Sequence record: LC494302.1
Reading direction: 5' to 3' (one strand)
Length of the DNA stretch: 64,000 nucleotides
Below the pieces are notes generated by a model that searched no databases, was not told the DNA's origin, and saw nothing but the letters and a program-made list of their open reading frames with translations. The number at the start of each line of letters is the position of its first letter. The stretch's first letter is position 1. Both the position numbers and the translations under genes were made by a program. Positions 6,819 through 59,531 of the stretch are shown here, piece by piece.

Positions 6819-7348
6819 AAGAAACATGCGTATTAACTTTTGGACGTGTTAATCCCGTACATCGTGGACATGGTTTAGTTTTTGAAAAGGCCAAAACATT
6901 ACAAGAACAGTACAATGCTGATTTAAAAATATATCTAAGCACCAGTACTGACAATATAAAAAACCCACTCCCACCTGAACTAAAAATGTATTATACAGAG
7001 GGATTCTATCCTTCAGTGCAAGAGAACATCTACACAGAAGACAATCTATTTGATATAATGAGAGAACTGGATGGAAAGTACTTAGATGTTCTTTTCATAT
7101 GTGGTTCTGACCGTATTGATTCTTTTCAAAAAACTCTTGACATGTACAATGGTAAGTTGTATAATTTTTGTAGTATAAAAGCAATTCAAGCAGGTATTGA
7201 CCGTAATGTAAGTCAATATAGCTCAACACAAATGCGTAACTTCGCAAAAAATGAAGATTTTGATAGTTTTCGTGAGTTTTTACCTGGAAATGACGAGGAC
7301 TTAAAAATACAATTATTTGAAGACGTTATAAAATACATGAGGAAATAA
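6815..7348 (+). CDS. cytidylyltransferase-like (HxGH nucleotidyltransferase)
   Basis: TFGRVNPVHRGH, KNPL, CGSDR, SSTQMR motifs as in T4-like phage cytidyltransferase-family proteins. Confidence 0.85.
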   Translation: MKETCVLTFGRVNPVHRGHGLVFEKAKTLQEQYNADLKIYLSTSTDNIKNPLPPELKMYYTEGFYPSVQENIYTEDNLFDIMRELDGKYLDVLFICGSDRIDSFQKTLDMYNGKLYNFCSIKAIQAGIDRNVSQYSSTQMRNFAKNEDFDSFREFLPGNDEDLKIQLFEDVIKYMRK

Positions 7349-50961: not shown

Positions 50962-51528
50962 ATGGTCAAAACTTTATTACCACCACCAAAACGTCACAAA
51001 ATCAAAGAAATGAAAGAACAACGTACATTAAAGATGTACAACAATTTAGTTAAGTTACTGTGTAAAAGTCCATCGCTCAAAGCAGAGTTTAAAACTGATG
51101 ATGACCGTAAAGCACTAATTGAGATGAAATATATGCTCAGTAAAATGTCCTTTTACAAATTTGTAAAAGAATACGCATCTGACCCATTTAGTCCTCGTTG
51201 GAGAGCCAAACCAAGAGAGTATTTTTACGGTGGTTCATATACAGATCGCATTCAAGACACAGTGATGGGAGTTGAATTTGAAATCGATTATGAGCCGAAT
51301 GGTGAGGAAATCTTGCAGATTGAGAAACGTTTACCAAGTGAAGAAGAAATTTATGTTTATGCAAGAAAACTTTCAAATTACAGTTCAAGAATTACTCTAG
51401 GCAATTTAGATTCATTAATTATTTTCTATACACGTGTTGGTGTAGATAAGATGGTAACTAAACTCAATGAACTTTCATTACAACAAAAACAGATTAATGC
51501 ATACAAAGACATTACTGATTTATACTAA
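50962..51528 (+). CDS. hypothetical protein (tandem trio member 1)
   Basis: DDDRKALIEMKYMLSK; AGGAGG SD. Confidence 0.8.
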   Translation: MVKTLLPPPKRHKIKEMKEQRTLKMYNNLVKLLCKSPSLKAEFKTDDDRKALIEMKYMLSKMSFYKFVKEYASDPFSPRWRAKPREYFYGGSYTDRIQDTVMGVEFEIDYEPNGEEILQIEKRLPSEEEIYVYARKLSNYSSRITLGNLDSLIIFYTRVGVDKMVTKLNELSLQQKQINAYKDITDLY

Positions 51529-51534
51529 TGAGGA

Positions 51535-52056
51535 ATGGATATGTTTTTTGGATCAGTTGGAAAACAAAACAGTACTTTAATTTGGCATGAAATTATCTTC
51601 AAAATTATATCTAAAAGCTACTCACTAAAGGATATTATCACCACAGATAATGATAGACGTATCCTGTTAGATGCAAAATATAAATTGAGCAAACACCCTT
51701 TACTTTCTTTAATCATTGATTACGTTAATGATTATGAATCTAGTCGTTGGAAGTGGGAAGACGGCGGTTTATTTCGTGGAAAAACATTCTACGGTGCGGA
51801 ACGATATGTTTTCAGTGATGCATCAAATGGCGTTAAGTTTGTTATTAGAAACTTTAACTCCAAAGAAAATGATTATCTTGAAAGTGGAGTGAAAGTATAT
51901 ATCGATAATAATAGCAATGTCCTAACATATGACGAATCACTAATTATGTTACAAATAATGCGTGGTGTTGAAGGTGTAAGAAACAACCTTACTAAATTGA
52001 AAATCCAGCAAAATGATATACATAATAGACAGAAAATTAAGGGTTTATATAAATGA
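51535..52056 (+). CDS. hypothetical protein (tandem trio member 2)
   Basis: DNDRRILLDAKYKLSK. Confidence 0.8.
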   Translation: MDMFFGSVGKQNSTLIWHEIIFKIISKSYSLKDIITTDNDRRILLDAKYKLSKHPLLSLIIDYVNDYESSRWKWEDGGLFRGKTFYGAERYVFSDASNGVKFVIRNFNSKENDYLESGVKVYIDNNSNVLTYDESLIMLQIMRGVEGVRNNLTKLKIQQNDIHNRQKIKGLYK

Positions 52057-52562
52057 TTTCATTTTTCAAAAAGAAACAAAAAGTTGATGAAACAGGATTA
52101 GAATCGTTTCTATGGACTCTTATCATCAAAAAAAGTCCATTGATAAAAGAATATGCTATCAATGATGCTAATAGAAAAACTATCATTGAATACAAATACG
52201 AATTATCAAAATGTGATCCAATCGTTTATCACTTTGCGAAGTACTGTTCAAAAAATTTATCGGATATCACAATAGACCATGAGTCAGTTCCAATGAGCTT
52301 TCCTTATGGTGATTGGGTAGATACTTTTGATATTTTTGATGGGTCCAATGGATTCAGTTTCTTTTACTCGTCAAATAAAGCAAATGTTCGTATTAAAACA
52401 GAGATAGGTTGGGCACAGCATAGCTCAAATAAAGAAGATTATAATTTACTAGCTGACGTATACCGAAGTGTGAAGAATTCAAAGGATATTGATGAAAGAA
52501 TTAAAAAGCAAAATCGTATTTCTTTATCACTTGAAACATACAAGTCAAAGTATGGTGGTTAA
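52053..52562 (+). CDS. hypothetical protein (tandem trio member 3)
   Basis: DANRKTIIEYKYELSK. Confidence 0.8.
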   Translation: MISFFKKKQKVDETGLESFLWTLIIKKSPLIKEYAINDANRKTIIEYKYELSKCDPIVYHFAKYCSKNLSDITIDHESVPMSFPYGDWVDTFDIFDGSNGFSFFYSSNKANVRIKTEIGWAQHSSNKEDYNLLADVYRSVKNSKDIDERIKKQNRISLSLETYKSKYGG

Positions 52563-54195: not shown

Positions 54196-54272
54196 CATAT
54201 ACAAGTGTAATGGTACTAAAAATGCCATTACACTCAATAAATACTCAATATAAATTAACACAAGGATTAAGT

Positions 54273-54900
54273 ATGGCACAACAAATTTTCACAGATATCC
54301 ACACTACCGGAGTTATTAAATTTCAAAATAATTTTTCAGGTGCAACTGGTGTAGACATTAAAAATGATGGTTTTAACATTGTCAGTACTCGGATCTATTG
54401 ATGGTGAAGATAGTTCTCTTAGTGATTCTGTGATTGCATCATTCGGAACTAATAAAAACAGTTCTTTTATTATATCTGGATGGACTGGAATGACTGATTC
54501 TGAAAATAATGTTAAGATAAAAGCTAAATCTACTAACGAGAATCATGAAACAGAATGGGTAACATTATATGATAGTGCAAGTAATAAGTTATATAATGTA
54601 CTAAGTTCTAATAACATTTTAATTAATCCACTGTCGGGTAATGCTGTTTTTAATATTAATTTATCTGATAGAAATACTACTATTTCGATTGGTGCGGCTC
54701 CTACTGAAGTTTATTCAATTACCATCCTATTAACACAACAAACAGGTTCAAACCTAGTTAATTGGGGTTCTAATGTTAAATGGTCATATAACAGACCAGT
54801 TGTTCTTTCTTATGAAATTGGCGAAAAAGATATTATTTCATTAGAAACATATGATAAAGGAGTTACATGGTACGGTGCATTAATTAGAGCAGGAGTATGA
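54273..54900 (+). pseudogene. structural-type gene split by an apparent +1 frameshift (54273-54401 and 54364-54900)
   Basis: ATG 54273 has an AAGGA SD; downstream piece lacks an SD; C-terminal TILLTQ.TGS..VNW...VKW...LS....DII...YD.G.TWYG module seen in phage structural proteins. Confidence 0.6.
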
Positions 54901-54901
54901 T

Positions 54902-57691
54902 ATGTTAAACAATAATATTGATAATATTGTACAACTTCTTTATGGGCATCACAAATTTATTGAAAGAAATACTGGTGATACAATAGACCCAACAGTACAA
55001 CATTATGTGGTGAATAATCAGGGTGTTTTGGCGAACAACCGTCATTTTATTAACTATTCTGCAATGGAAGGTCAACCAAACGGTGACGGGACAACAGAAG
55101 GTCAAAGTCTATTAATTTTAGGATACATTTATGCGTATCTGGCAACAAATGATCCAATGTTTTTAGATAAAGCCAAATGGTACTGGGATGCATATCATCA
55201 GTACTTTTATGCTGGGCGTGAATTACCAGACCCACCAACCCCACTGCAATGTAACTGGATAGTTAATGCCAAAGAACCGATTTTGGCTAACTGGCCTTTA
55301 GCTGATGATGGATGGCCTACACATGGTGGTTTCAAGGGTGTAGAATTTACATTTACAAATGGACAATGTAAAATACCACATGGTGCACCTTATTATGGTC
55401 AGTTCTTGGATAAAGTAACATTTGCATTCAAAGGTGCTTTAGCATGGAACCAAATAAATGCGTCAGTAAAAGCATTATTACCAGATGGTAGTGTTGATTG
55501 GGATACACCAGGTGAACAATATGATGTTGACTGGATTATCGATTTCATGGGTAGAAAAATCGACTGGGATGGTAATATTTTAGCAGAAGGTTTTGACGAA
55601 TCTGAAAAAGGAACTGTTCAATTAAAGAATACAACAATTAATGGTGTATATAAATTAAATTTTGCAAATCGTCAACCAGTAGAATATGGTGGTGTGATAA
55701 TTCAACGAAATGAAATGCAACACAACCGCCCTCTTCATGTTCCAATTGATTTGGAATTTGCTGATAACGCATCAGATGCAGAATTATGGTTTAGTGATGC
55801 TTCTTATTTGTTATATAAAATAACAAAAGAAAGAAAACATTATTTGGGTTGGAAATGTTCACTACTAACGTGTTATGCTTATGGTGATATTGACTCCAGA
55901 GATAAATTTTTCAGACAAAGTACAATTGTAACCACACCATTCACTGATGGTATTTCCTATGAATATTTTTATCCAAGTGATGCTATTGCTAAGTTTGGTA
56001 GAAATTCTCTAGGATATATTACTATCAGGCAAGACCAAAGTGCACAAAGTACTATGGAACAACAAGCTATTTGGTTCAGGGTCAATGCTGATTCTAAATT
56101 ACTTGTAGACTATGGTGGTGTATGTGATGATGGTAAGCCGTTATCATTTAAACCAGTACTGGAATTGTCAAAAACAAAAAATGACCATGATGTTGTTCGT
56201 TATCGTTGTGGCTTACCGGAAAGTAAAGACCAAAATATCACACATTCATTAACACCTTTAAGTGCATTTGTTAGAGAAAAGAAAGCAGATGGTTCCCCTT
56301 ATATAATTGCTGATAGTAGAATTGTTGTTCCTTATGGTGCAGCTACGTCCGAAATGATATATAGTACTGATATATTAGTTACACGCCGCGATACCATTAA
56401 TCAGTTAGTTTGTGGTGAAGATGATGGTGCTGTTATTGGATTTTGGCTATTAGCAACAAATAAGTCTGAAGTTAAATCTTTTACCTATCGTTCATATGAA
56501 GATGATTACAATATAAGAATTGTAGATGATAATGGTTGGAGATGGTGGTGGATGATTCCTGCAACACACGGGGAATGGACTACAATCACACTAAGTTCCG
56601 ATACATTACGTTTATCTGGGTATCAGCCAAATCATCCAAGTTCTGACCCAAGACCAGATGCACCAGTTTATAGTGAACTAGAAGATATTACTATTTTACC
56701 TGATACAACCCCAGTAGATGGTGTTGCTGCAATAATTGATTGGTATTGTATTAATGACATTCCAGAATTATACACGGATGCTGACGGTGATGACTATACT
56801 ATGACATTTTCAATAACAATTGCAGGTGAATCACCATATACTGCACAGTTAGGGGATTGTGTAATCAAGGATTATTTGTTAAACTCATTGCATTACACAC
56901 CAGGAACAATACCATTTTCTAACATCACTGACCCGTATGCGAACCAGTATTCAGGATGGCGTGGTTTACCGTATCCAGGTTATCAATATCCTGTGATATA
57001 TTGTTTTAAAGACCAGCCGGTAGATAACACACGCTTAGGAAACATGTTAAGCTTTATGAAAGATTCCCAAACATGGTTTACTCAACAATTCGGTACTGTT
57101 GGTCCGTGTGCACAAGCATATGTTTGGAACCGCTGGGATAACTTAAAATATGGTGAACCAGATACATTTACTATGCTACATTGGGGTGATCAAGCATGGA
57201 GTGGGTATGAACCACGTGCGTTCTTTGGGGCTGCCAGAGCATGGCAAGAACTCGCAGAGAGAGGAATTGAACCACCAGCAGATCTTGTTGAATTTTGTGA
57301 GAATTGGATTCACTTTTTAATTCAATTTCAAAAAGATAATGATGGTCGTTCACCAACAATCTTCAATAAAGATGGCACAGTTGAAGGTCCAGATTGGGAC
57401 TTTACAGGTCATATGTGTGGGTTGTGGTTAGCTGGGGCTTGTGCTGCTGGATTGGCTGGATGTAAAATAGAAGGTCTAACAACACTCGCTGATAACTTAG
57501 TTCTCGAACTTCAAAAGAATTATGTTATTGTAAATCCAGGTTCACCAATGAATGGTTCATGGAGTCCAGCAGTTAGAGAAGGTACTGATAATGGTATGTT
57601 TTTTGGTTTCTGGGCAGGTGAGATTATGCGTGGATTGGGATTATACTCAATGTACCGCTTAAACACACCAAATCGTTTCCGTGATTTATAA
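54902..57691 (+). CDS. GH8-like (six-hairpin) glycoside hydrolase with inserted beta-domains
   Basis: GTTEGQS and DNASDAELW match recalled GH8/BcsZ motifs TSEGQS and NSASDGDVW; Trp-rich insert. Confidence 0.65.
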   Translation: MLNNNIDNIVQLLYGHHKFIERNTGDTIDPTVQHYVVNNQGVLANNRHFINYSAMEGQPNGDGTTEGQSLLILGYIYAYLATNDPMFLDKAKWYWDAYHQYFYAGRELPDPPTPLQCNWIVNAKEPILANWPLADDGWPTHGGFKGVEFTFTNGQCKIPHGAPYYGQFLDKVTFAFKGALAWNQINASVKALLPDGSVDWDTPGEQYDVDWIIDFMGRKIDWDGNILAEGFDESEKGTVQLKNTTINGVYKLNFANRQPVEYGGVIIQRNEMQHNRPLHVPIDLEFADNASDAELWFSDASYLLYKITKERKHYLGWKCSLLTCYAYGDIDSRDKFFRQSTIVTTPFTDGISYEYFYPSDAIAKFGRNSLGYITIRQDQSAQSTMEQQAIWFRVNADSKLLVDYGGVCDDGKPLSFKPVLELSKTKNDHDVVRYRCGLPESKDQNITHSLTPLSAFVREKKADGSPYIIADSRIVVPYGAATSEMIYSTDILVTRRDTINQLVCGEDDGAVIGFWLLATNKSEVKSFTYRSYEDDYNIRIVDDNGWRWWWMIPATHGEWTTITLSSDTLRLSGYQPNHPSSDPRPDAPVYSELEDITILPDTTPVDGVAAIIDWYCINDIPELYTDADGDDYTMTFSITIAGESPYTAQLGDCVIKDYLLNSLHYTPGTIPFSNITDPYANQYSGWRGLPYPGYQYPVIYCFKDQPVDNTRLGNMLSFMKDSQTWFTQQFGTVGPCAQAYVWNRWDNLKYGEPDTFTMLHWGDQAWSGYEPRAFFGAARAWQELAERGIEPPADLVEFCENWIHFLIQFQKDNDGRSPTIFNKDGTVEGPDWDFTGHMCGLWLAGACAAGLAGCKIEGLTTLADNLVLELQKNYVIVNPGSPMNGSWSPAVREGTDNGMFFGFWAGEIMRGLGLYSMYRLNTPNRFRDL

Positions 57692-57692
57692 C

Positions 57693-57752
57693 TTGACATA
57701 GAAAAAGTAATTATGTATAATCAGAGAACTTCATATGGAGTTCTCTTTTTTT
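57693..57752 (+). promoter_or_regulatory. consensus sigma70 promoter overlapping an intrinsic terminator
   Basis: TTGACA-N17-TATAAT (57693-57721) then AGAGAACTTC-atat-GGAGTTCTCT plus T-tract. Confidence 0.8.
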
Positions 57753-57765
57753 ATAAGGTGATAAA

Positions 57766-58185
57766 ATGTTAAATGAACGTATTAAAAATGCACTACATGT
57801 ATTGAACCAAGAAGTAAATTCTATTGATAAAAGTACTGACCGTTATAAAGTAATGCATGAAATCAAACAAGAATTGGAATCTATTAATAAGGGAGAATGG
57901 TGGTATCTTCAGCCCGAATATCAAACTCGTGAATTAAACGATGTTGAAAAAGAAATTGTCAAATTCATCACTACTCGTTACTGTGATACATCAGAGAATG
58001 AGGTATCAGCGAACTTCAATCTTACTAAATTGGAAGTCGAAGAAAAATTCAATTTTGATTGGCTTGATTGGATTGAAATGGTCATGGAACTAGAAGAAAA
58101 ATTCAATGTTGAAGTTGATGAAAAGTTCGAGAATAATGAAACGAAGCTGTATGAACTAGTAGAACATATTCAAAAAATGTTGTAA
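57766..58185 (+). CDS. acyl-carrier-protein-like protein lacking the phosphopantetheine Ser
   Basis: FDWLDWIEMVMELEEKFNVEV aligns with ACP [21 protein letters not shown]; ~55 aa N-terminal extension. Confidence 0.75.
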   Translation: MLNERIKNALHVLNQEVNSIDKSTDRYKVMHEIKQELESINKGEWWYLQPEYQTRELNDVEKEIVKFITTRYCDTSENEVSANFNLTKLEVEEKFNFDWLDWIEMVMELEEKFNVEVDEKFENNETKLYELVEHIQKML

Positions 58186-58238
58186 AACTATACAATTGTA
58201 TACTCTAAATAATATCATCAACTATAGGAGATATTATT

Positions 58239-58613
58239 ATGAGTATGTTAGAAATAATTGTTTCAAAAATTCTTATTCCATTTTGGAAACCAATTTCTTT
58301 TGTATTATTAATTGGCGGTTCAGCTTATGCTGGTTGGGAAGCTAATACTTATTACAGTGGATATCAACAAAGCATAGAGCAACAAATAGCTAAAAAAGTT
58401 GATACCGCCTTGGATAAAATGCAACAAGAAAATGCAAAAAATTACCTTGAAACTAAAAAAATCATGGAAGATAATGCTAAAGTTATTGAAACAAAGGTTC
58501 CTTTTATTGTAGAACGTGAAGTTTATAAGAATGTATGTTTAGATGAAGATGGTGTAAAAGTACTGAATGAACTAAAACAAAATTCTCAAGCAGCGAGGAA
58601 TAAATTCAAATGA
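58239..58613 (+). CDS. i-spanin (Rz-like)
   Basis: N-terminal TM helix, coiled coil, VEREVYKNVCLDEDG; overlaps a lipoprotein gene. Confidence 0.72.
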   Translation: MSMLEIIVSKILIPFWKPISFVLLIGGSAYAGWEANTYYSGYQQSIEQQIAKKVDTALDKMQQENAKNYLETKKIMEDNAKVIETKVPFIVEREVYKNVCLDEDGVKVLNELKQNSQAARNKFK

Positions 58614-58918
58614 AAAAATTATTAGTTCCGTTTATTTCTTTTTTAATTATAAGTGGGTGTGCCGAACAAGTAAAACTACAATCCCCTGCACCAATTAAAC
58701 AAGAAATTCTGTTAGAAAGATGTGATGATGATACACCTCTACCACAAAAAATTATGATTGACAAAAATGGTTTTAAAGGTTATGATGGTGCAGAAATTCT
58801 TAAAGTACTTACTCGTTGGGATGCAGTCTACAATGAATGTGCTTTAAAACATGACGCATTGATTAAAACTATTCGTGATTTACAAGGTAAAGATATTAAA
58901 ATCAATATCAAGGAATAA
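58610..58918 (+). CDS. o-spanin (Rz1-like lipoprotein)
   Basis: lipobox ISGC, LLERC..PLP, YNECALKHDALI. Confidence 0.72.
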   Translation: MKKLLVPFISFLIISGCAEQVKLQSPAPIKQEILLERCDDDTPLPQKIMIDKNGFKGYDGAEILKVLTRWDAVYNECALKHDALIKTIRDLQGKDIKINIKE

Positions 58919-58919
58919 A

Positions 58920-59531
58920 ATGAACAAATATCATGTTTACTATACGACAAAATTATCACTTCTTGAAGAATTAAATCAACGAAGTACTAAGATGAAACGC
59001 TACACTTTAAATGGTATTACTTTTCGATATTTCCCACAAAAAGTTCTTACTTTTGTTAAGAATCCAAAATGCGTGGCATGTGGGATTGAAGCTACTGAAG
59101 TACGCATTGAACGTTCATTATGTTCTGATCCAGTATATGGTAAACCACATTTAAATGTATATGCTGTATGTGGTCTTTATGAAGTTTTAATGACAGTTGA
59201 CCATAATCATCTGGCATCTAAGGGTGGACCTGATTTAGAGTCAAACTTTAATACTATGTGCTCCAGATGTAATCAACTACGTTCGAATAAAACTGAAACA
59301 GTTGATGAGTTTCTTGAAAAAGTTAAAGGTCGTAATCTTCTCCAAGAACATATGAATAATTTCTTTAATGTACAAAAAAAGAAAAATAACATTGACAAGT
59401 CGAAACTACTAGAAGAACGTAGGTTACGTCAAGAATTATGGGAAACCGATCATCTATGGCATGTTCGAGAGTTTGGTCGTCATATGAAAGCTTTGAAAAA
59501 AGAACAGAAGAAATTGAATAAACATGATTGA
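58920..59531 (+). CDS. HNH endonuclease-like protein
   Basis: CVACG ... TVDHNHLASKGG...NFNTMCSRCN; start reassigned behind AAGGA. Confidence 0.8.
   Translation: MNKYHVYYTTKLSLLEELNQRSTKMKRYTLNGITFRYFPQKVLTFVKNPKCVACGIEATEVRIERSLCSDPVYGKPHLNVYAVCGLYEVLMTVDHNHLASKGGPDLESNFNTMCSRCNQLRSNKTETVDEFLEKVKGRNLLQEHMNNFFNVQKKKNNIDKSKLLEERRLRQELWETDHLWHVREFGRHMKALKKEQKKLNKHD

Follow-up and report, generated by a model that had tools for sequence, protein, structure and literature searches.

A serine-less acyl carrier protein-like protein of Escherichia phage SP27 is probably a cofactor-independent binding protein

The window analysed in this work is a 64 kb stretch of the 347 kb genome of Escherichia phage SP27 (LC494302.1; genus Asteriusvirus), which carries a gene for a two-domain protein resembling acyl carrier proteins (ACPs). 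By fold and descent the protein belongs to the ACP superfamily, but a tryptophan replaces the equivalent of Ser36 of Escherichia coli AcpP, so that it has no canonical cofactor site. With high probability it is a binding protein which uses the ACP fold independently of a cofactor. As a whole, we tentatively propose an ex-carrier turned into a cofactor-independent binding module, most likely a look-alike of apo-ACP acting on host client proteins; taken by itself, the step to a host decoy is rather unlikely. The evolutionary pattern is clean; the function is inferred. An earlier note, made from the sequence alone, had described the open reading frame (ORF) as a candidate non-modifiable ACP mimic; the ORF exists as described there, and its parts are the following.

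57766-58185, plus strand: ACP-like coding sequence (139 aa; EO157G_4820; PHROG 18343)
57766-57930, plus strand: N-terminal domain, residues 1-55, two long helices (4-18, 23-41) and a linker
57934-58179, plus strand: ACP-fold domain, residues 57-138, from sequence, profile and fold matches
58057-58104, plus strand: D98 and helix II (residues 99-113), the counterpart of the recognition helix, from model, alignment and conservation
58060-58062, plus strand: TGG codon of Trp99, at the position of Ser36 of E. coli AcpP in alignments to ACPs

A phmmer search against PDB sequences returned acyl carrier proteins as 59 of the 60 matches listed (best match 3gzl, E=3.3e-4), and the alignment placed D-W-L-D of the phage protein opposite D-S-L-D of Plasmodium ACP. 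BLASTP against E. coli AcpP (MG1655, b1094) aligned FDWLDWIEMVMELEEKFNVEV with 48% identity across 31 residues. In this alignment and in a multiple alignment, the phage residues Trp99, D98, D101, E104, E110-E111 and F113 pair with Ser36, D35, D38, E41, E47-E48 and F50 of AcpP, respectively. The 'acyl carrier protein' families of PHROG matched with E=1.2e-7 and 3.4e-6, and NCBIfam TIGR00517 with E=1.1e-5, the latter at 25.2 bits and hence below its curated cut-off of 70.45; PF00550 (12.1 bits, cut-off 20.8) and PF14573 (17.9 bits, cut-off 32) were both sub-threshold, although these profile matches are significant. An AlphaFold2 model computed from 13 family sequences (mean pLDDT 83.7, pTM 0.66) consists of helices at residues 4-18 and 23-41 followed by the helices of the ACP domain. 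Using Foldseek against PDB and AlphaFold DB, residues ~57-138 were matched to ACPs with template modelling (TM) scores by target of 0.70-0.78 and a probability of 1.00. Sequence searches, NCBIfam and PHROG profiles and structure comparison thus agree with the earlier assignment, and residues ~57-138 form a four-helix ACP fold. The N-terminal extension is helical, as had been read from the sequence, and the Foldseek search gave no structural match outside the ACP domain.

Like AcpP (b1094; PF00550/TIGR00517), the SP27 protein has the four-helix fold (TM by target up to 0.78), with a helix II that opens with D-x-L-D, and it possesses counterparts of D35, D38, E41, E47, E48 and F50. Unlike AcpP, it has Trp in place of both Ser36 and Thr39, a helical domain of 55 residues at its N-terminus and a more extended loop joining helices I and II, and its profile scores are far under the curated cut-offs. 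Since every profile score remains under its curated cut-off, the domain is a divergent ACP fold and not an AcpP orthologue. The phosphopantetheine-binding Ser of the D-S-L motif is not present, residue 99 being Trp in all ACP alignments. The earlier note was therefore right that TGG stands at the Ser36 position and that the protein is non-modifiable at the canonical 4'-phosphopantetheine site. Family members are currently recorded as hypothetical, acyl carrier protein, acpP or D-alanyl carrier protein; with the carrier-defining Ser absent and the curated thresholds failed, the acpP, acyl carrier protein and D-alanyl carrier protein labels are inappropriate for SP27, where the ORF is annotated as the hypothetical gene EO157G_4820.

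The tryptophan is genuine. Positions 57000-59000 of the window are identical to SP27 and show 99% identity to 121Q, PBECO4, phAPEC6 and ~20 more jumbo coliphages. D-W-L-D-W with TGG is present in all nine distinct sequences of the SP27-type group and of a second Trp group (vB_Ec-M-J, Ecwhy_1, fEgEco12 and others) which is ~72% identical to the first. We rejected an isolate or sequencing error, a risk named in the earlier note, on the grounds that the same TGG occurs in >20 independently sequenced phage genomes and in this second sublineage, that TGG is two nucleotide changes away from the TCA of the nearest Ser-bearing relatives, and that no variant at 58060-58062 was seen in four public runs. 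Conservation of the Trp among orthologues holds for part of the genus: the whole clade of SP27 and vB_Ec-M-J has TGG, while the nearest Asteriusvirus outgroups (A4, ph0011, P0008-P0011) carry Ser with the codon TCA. The refuting condition set in the earlier note, Ser in orthologues, thus applies only by half. Between the two Trp sublineages, the ratio of nonsynonymous to synonymous substitution rates (dN/dS) is 0.21 at dS 0.81 with both domains constrained, so the gene is functional; against other Asteriusvirus orthologues the ratio is 0.17-0.40.

Homologues covering the full length with the same two-domain architecture occur in Asteriusvirus, Alcyoneusvirus, Mimasvirus and Eneladusvirus, and the PHROG 18343 profile matches residues 2-139 of the SP27 protein with E=2.6e-61. 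Protein searches and tblastn against phage genomes yielded a family set of 41 distinct members, in which the Ser36-equivalent residue is W, S, T, D, E, N or R. It is distributed as follows.

Ser: Asteriusvirus A4, ph0011 and several metagenomic sequences
Thr: every Klebsiella Alcyoneusvirus (RaK2, K64-1)
Asn: Turkey5
Arg: P0014
Glu: P0016
Asp: P0018 group
Trp: SP27 group and vB_Ec-M-J group

Canonical D-S-L-D is found in the more distant Mimasvirus (CBB, GAP32, XbC2), Eneladusvirus (BF, fHe-Yen9-03/04), Kaldavass, Munch and two metagenomic contigs. In a maximum-likelihood tree the family divides into two halves with support 99/99: clade A (nine sequences) comprises Mimasvirus, Eneladusvirus and Munch-like phages, and clade B (17 sequences), which includes SP27, comprises Asteriusvirus, Alcyoneusvirus and metagenomic relatives. 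The Trp clade has a single origin and is nested among Ser-bearing Asteriusvirus (support 94/89 and 96/94). Within clade A, an internal tree length of ~10.4 substitutions per site (obtained by subtraction) contains zero changes at the Ser site, and the 10.87 substitutions per site of clade B contain six. If rates were equal, all six changes would land in clade B with P ~0.02, and for a site of average rate the chance of zero change in clade A is ~3e-5; in clade B the Ser site evolves at ~0.55 of the mean rate. Judged by these tree lengths, change counts and site rates, Ser is strongly constrained in clade A, as expected for a working carrier, and near-unconstrained in clade B.

A position-wise comparison indicates what else changed between the clades. 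D98, D101, E104 and E110 as well as R26-Y27 of the N-terminal domain are kept in both; Ser99, Leu100, Glu111 and Thr127 are kept in clade A only; and Trp102, Ala9, Leu10, Glu16 and Ser23 are invariant in clade B only. Trp102 sits three residues past the Ser site, at the position of Thr39 of E. coli ACP, and several clade B lineages have a second Trp beside it, at residue 99 (SP27) or residue 100 (RaK2, P0015). The family-wide novelty coinciding with release of the Ser is Trp102 and not Trp99. The SP27 protein retains an acidic recognition helix II. Its N-terminal domain is conserved on a par with the ACP domain or better, which the earlier note had missed.

These patterns bear on the mechanism which that note had put forward, namely that Trp99 may mimic the phosphopantetheine or acyl arm; taken for holo- or acyl-ACP, the protein would then sequester arm-requiring partners such as SpoT and IscS. 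The retention of Trp in both W sublineages across dS ~0.8 fits this idea, as do the aromatics that cluster where helix II of clade B proteins begins (W102 throughout, joined by W99 or W100 in some lineages). However, retention of a single TGG codon would happen neutrally with a chance of ~0.1 (a rough estimate from dS) and is therefore weak evidence. Moreover, the invariant aromatic is W102, and sister lineages have S, T, D, E, N or R at residue 99 while the rest of the protein is conserved. As the site accommodates all these residues and varies at about half the average rate, it looks unconstrained rather than selected for Trp. SpoT does not bind apo-ACP (PMC3896788) and binding to IscS is lost with S36T, D35N or D38N (PMC13343975); both need the modified Ser36 and are hence poor candidates for partners. 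We consider a Trp99 mimic improbable; Trp99 is presumably just one among the residues that the site tolerates, and the mechanism would not hinge on it.

The Ser-bearing proteins of related jumbo phages (CBB_163, GAP32_159, BF_0158 of Serratia phage BF, g153/g156 of Yersinia phage fHe-Yen9, gp181 of Salmonella phage Munch) resemble the SP27 protein in their two domains, the R-Y motif, full-length homology and the genome place between an RlaP-type nucleotidyltransferase block and the spanins. They differ in having D-S-L-D and an overlapping oxygenase-like gene, whereas SP27 has D-W-L-D-W and no such gene. In clade A and RaK2, the ACP-like gene begins before the preceding gene, which encodes a 187-aa protein (PHROG 21561), has ended; the two share 29 nt in most genomes, but 4 nt in RaK2 and 17 nt in the contig of P0015; examples on the retrieved loci are L006:3441-4001 (RaK2 ORF008), L007:3412-3978 (CBB_162) and L016:4001-4558. 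This protein is found in Alcyoneus-, Mimas- and Eneladusvirus and in Munch-like phages with 55-64% identity between genera, and its conservation far exceeds that of the ACP-like protein. Across 26 aligned sequences, H90-x-D92, H158 and R169/R173 are invariant. A motif of the type H-x-D...H...R is typical of 2-oxoglutarate (2OG)/Fe(II) oxygenases. The predicted structure is beta-rich (pLDDT 89.8, pTM 0.86), and the nearest named clusters of a protein atlas built on a language model are without exception families of 2OG/Fe(II) oxygenases (PhyH, 2OG-FeII_Oxy_3, Kdo hydroxylase, WelO5 and HalD), with scores of 0.81-0.85 that count as leads only. From motif, secondary structure and embedding neighbours, the PHROG 21561 protein is probably a 2OG/Fe(II) oxygenase; some records name it oxidoreductase. 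Weaker homologues occur in Acinetobacter phages.

This partner of the Ser-bearing relatives, which the earlier note had also missed, is lacking in SP27. By tblastn the PHROG 21561 gene is absent from all Escherichia phages in our collection, and it is likewise missing in the SP27 window and in the contigs that carry the Glu- and Asp-type proteins; a profile comparison for a diverged oxygenase among the small upstream genes of SP27 was negative. SP27 accordingly has no oxygenase-like gene that is adjacent to and co-translated with the ACP-like gene, and all Asteriusvirus-like clade B genomes examined are without it. Replacements of the Ser other than Ser-to-Thr all lie in genomes without the oxygenase-like gene, and RaK2 (Thr) retains it, so that the correlation between Ser replacement and absence of this gene is good but not perfect.

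Loss of the oxygenase partner might have left a functionless protein on its way out. The former key residue drifts freely in clade B, and the E-values of the ACP profile weaken from CBB (3e-13) over SP27 (1e-5) to RaK2 (0.15), as would be expected of such a remnant. Yet every genome examined has an intact reading frame, dN/dS is low with both domains constrained, clade B has gained new invariant residues, and the SP27 gene has a consensus promoter of its own. We regard decay as hardly credible.

In all genera, the ACP-like gene closes a block opened by the RlaP-type nucleotidyltransferase gene (PF10127) and lies directly 5' of the i-spanin/o-spanin pair. This arrangement is relevant for what we see as the main rival of the host-decoy reading: that the protein serves a phage enzyme as adaptor or subunit, this enzyme being the oxygenase-like protein in clade A and perhaps the RlaP-type nucleotidyltransferase in Asteriusvirus, with a regulatory or stabilising role like that of ACP in certain complexes of the host and no action on host clients. 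We rate it as possible but doubtful. Translational coupling to the oxygenase-like gene in clade A argues for it, as do the family-specific conserved N-terminal domain and the clade-specific invariant residues. In genomes without the oxygenase, the ACP-like gene abuts or overlaps the RlaP gene (4-nt overlap in P0018, locus L021; 1-nt gap in locus L022; 11-nt gap in vB_Ec-M-J). On the other side, a tail-fibre module splits the two genes in SP27, A4 and Turkey5, and the ACP-like gene has its own promoter. Synteny of the entire block is common to all these phages, which makes adjacency a weak argument for an adaptor. A fusion of the two proteins was met only once, in phage CMSTMSU (MH494197.1), in which an annotated 432-aa coding sequence (L027:731-2029) comprises the C-terminal portion of the nucleotidyltransferase together with the ACP-like protein. 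As this record is flagged unverified and the neighbouring genes are fragmented, we rejected it as a natural fusion and judged it probably an assembly artefact.

The tail-fibre module of SP27 (window 54210-57691) contains ORFs of 63 aa and 178 aa and a 929-aa tail protein. As vB_Ec-M-J and ph0011 do not have it at this place, the module resembles a host-range cassette that is mobile or can be exchanged. Three tandem paralogues lie 5' of the nucleotidyltransferase gene at 50962-52562 of the window (two of PHROG 18641 and one of PHROG 7868, which are cross-matching families); clade A phages have two PHROG 10375 paralogues 3' of the nucleotidyltransferase gene in their place. The nucleotidyltransferase gene of the Asp-type P0018 (L021:3774-5004) is seemingly split, with tblastn matches in two pieces and a called gene of 287 aa.

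Between the tail-fibre module and the ACP-like gene of SP27, the following expression signals were detected.

57693-57721, plus strand: sigma70-type promoter, TTGACA-17 nt-TATAAT, 12/12 consensus positions
57723-57753, plus strand: hairpin (10 bp) followed by a T run, likely the intrinsic terminator of the upstream tail-fibre gene, from terminator scan and RNA fold
57755-57760, plus strand: Shine-Dalgarno sequence AAGGTG, 5 nt 5' of the ATG, read directly from the sequence

The consensus promoter noticed before was thus confirmed. Perfect TTGACA-N17-TATAAT sites occur twice in the 64 kb (57693-57721 and 7137-7165), with 0.37 expected by chance. The hairpin at 57723-57746 (RNA fold -13.8 kcal/mol, z = -3.2) starts two bases past the -10 box and lies between this box and the start codon. 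Judged from this layout, it would terminate transcription arriving from upstream, while RNA started at the promoter would not contain the full 5' arm: with a transcript start ~7 nt past the -10 box, inside the 5' arm, it would escape termination. The cassette of promoter and hairpin with T run is common to SP27, ph0011 and A4. In vB_Ec-M-J there is no such promoter, and the ACP-like gene follows 11 nt after the nucleotidyltransferase gene. No Rfam element was found in the leader of the ACP-like gene. Public RNA runs provided only low-depth contigs of wastewater metatranscriptomes, without strand or timing.

Downstream of the ACP-like gene, a conserved CTCTAAATAATA (core CTAAATA) is located at 58203-58214 of the window, ~25 nt 5' of the i-spanin start codon. 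The CTAAATA motif precedes the spanin genes in all clade B genomes (Asteriusvirus, RaK2 and metagenomic relatives; loci L002-L006, L021 and L022) and is a candidate late promoter of the spanin pair; it resembles the consensus of T4-type late promoters. CBB and Munch have a terminator between the ACP-like gene and the spanins. With a motif of their own in clade B and a terminator between in relatives, adjacency to the spanins does not mean co-transcription, and co-transcription with or a lysis role beside the spanins was rejected as not supported. A perfect 14-nt palindrome, TATACAATTGTATA, is located at 58189-58202 between the stop codon of the ACP-like gene and the CTAAATA motif; vB_Ec-M-J, ph0011 and A4 do not share it. 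Directly 3' of the spanin pair lies a gene for an HNH endonuclease (58920-59531), a likely mobile element that Asteriusvirus, RaK2 and Munch-type phages carry and that CBB, GAP32, XbC2 and BF lack at this place.

The same neighbourhood was considered for a virion-associated or assembly protein, or a protein taking part in lysis with the spanins, which we find very improbable. The gene is always directly 5' of the spanin pair, and an Eneladusvirus homologue was detected by virion mass spectrometry of three Erwinia phages, whose authors remarked on the spanin adjacency (PMC7760394). This detection was weak, with 3-5 counts and 8-15% coverage (PMC7760394), and the 62 virion proteins of phAPEC6, which is ~98% identical to SP27, include the neighbouring tail fibre gp314c and not the ACP-like gp313c. 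The late-promoter-like motif of the spanins and the terminator in CBB and Munch speak against it as well, and so does the early-type promoter of the SP27 gene. A relation to defence systems was also rejected, as PADLOC gave no match for the ACP-like, the oxygenase-like or the nucleotidyltransferase protein.

We therefore return to a cofactor-independent binding protein as the favoured explanation. It builds on the fold, the variation at the Ser site, the tree, purifying selection, the acidic helix II, the clade-B-only W102 and the promoter. With the Ser dispensable in the SP27 branch, the protein must work in another way, probably by binding a partner. It would be a two-domain early protein made of a helical N-terminal hairpin and the ACP four-helix bundle, which arose from a true carrier protein with Ser in Rak2-like jumbo phages and has given up the prosthetic group. 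W102 appeared in clade B, after which the Ser site changed at least six times. Action would be purely by protein-protein binding through the acidic recognition helix, the clade-specific Trp and the N-terminal hairpin. Most likely, the protein would then be a permanent apo-ACP look-alike, made early from a host-type promoter, which may occupy the basic docking site of host clients that accept unmodified ACP, such as PlsB (glycerol-3-phosphate acyltransferase), MukB or AcpS. Disturbed lipid synthesis, nucleoid handling or ACP maturation could be the consequence. A still more specific version is quite unlikely: that the look-alike of the SP27/121Q/PBECO4 group docks by the acidic helix on PlsB, MukB or AcpS, with W102 and possibly W99 plugging for the lost arm, and shuts down phospholipid synthesis, condensin action or ACP maturation.

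Several reports on E. coli ACP are consistent with such a look-alike. Apo-ACP inhibits glycerol-3-phosphate acyltransferase more strongly than holo-ACP does (PMC3896788) and stops growth (PMC3896788, PMC8602292). MukB is bound, and its ATPase stimulated, equally by apo- and holo-AcpP, and the interfaces of ACP with its partners centre on acidic residues of helix alpha2 (PMC8602292). Because MukB accepts apo-ACP and apo-ACP inhibits the acyltransferase, the decoy idea of the earlier note would still be viable, with other partners than SpoT and IscS. Searching for a phosphopantetheinyl transferase, tblastn with E. coli AcpS was negative in every Rak2-like phage; Sfp-type enzymes were not searched for. 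The first 50 kb of an annotated relative genome, inspected for lipid- or carrier-related enzymes, contain nearly exclusively hypothetical proteins.

A number of points weigh against the look-alike. Its decoy step is drawn by inference, and binding to ACP clients is a proposal. Conservation of the N-terminal domain equals that of the ACP domain, and host ACP has nothing corresponding to it, so a dedicated phage partner is no worse a fit than mimicry. In vB_Ec-M-J and two metagenomic relatives (among these lineages are P0016 and P0018), the ACP-like gene immediately follows or overlaps the nucleotidyltransferase gene, and an own sigma70 promoter exists only in part of the genus. RaK2 has Thr and still the oxygenase-like gene, so that Ser loss and gene loss are not strictly linked, and Ser is kept in some oxygenase-less Asteriusvirus. 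Finally, the PHROG 21561 protein found no match in Pfam or PDB sequence searches, which leaves its oxygenase label, derived from motif, secondary structure and embedding neighbours, probable and not proven.

Known systems offer partial parallels. Apo-ACP and Ser36 mutants of E. coli ACP likewise have the ACP fold without a prosthetic group; apo-ACP, however, is the host's own protein in unmodified form, whereas the SP27 protein is ~25% identical, has an extra domain, and its partner binding is proposed. Structural or regulatory ACPs (ACPM/SDAP of mitochondrial complex I, ISD11-NFS1-ACP, MukB-AcpP) use the ACP fold as a protein-binding subunit, as we propose for SP27, and chains of such ACPs appear among the sequence and fold matches of the SP27 protein. 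In the mitochondrial ACP complexes the acyl-phosphopantetheine arm is part of the interface; unlike these subunits, the SP27 protein has no arm. In the literature searched, neither phage ACPs without the serine nor the role of the present family are treated; 'acyl carrier proteins' of phages appear there as annotations that lack a described function, and host takeover via the ACP interaction hub is not described.

ACP is among the most connected bacterial proteins, serving fatty-acid, lipid A, biotin and lipoate synthesis and binding SpoT, IscS and MukB. If the SP27 protein is merely a subunit of a phage enzyme, its interest would be local and concern the annotation of jumbo phages. If the look-alike reading is true, it would represent a route of host takeover through the ACP interaction hub. 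The family also constitutes a natural experiment, since one half keeps the Ser together with the oxygenase-like partner and the other half has dropped the need for the Ser while the protein is still selected; the split into two clades thereby separates the carrier role of the ACP fold from its binding role. Family members with S, T, D, E, N, R or W at the Ser site are ready constructs for probing whether a phage turns the ACP docking surface against its host.

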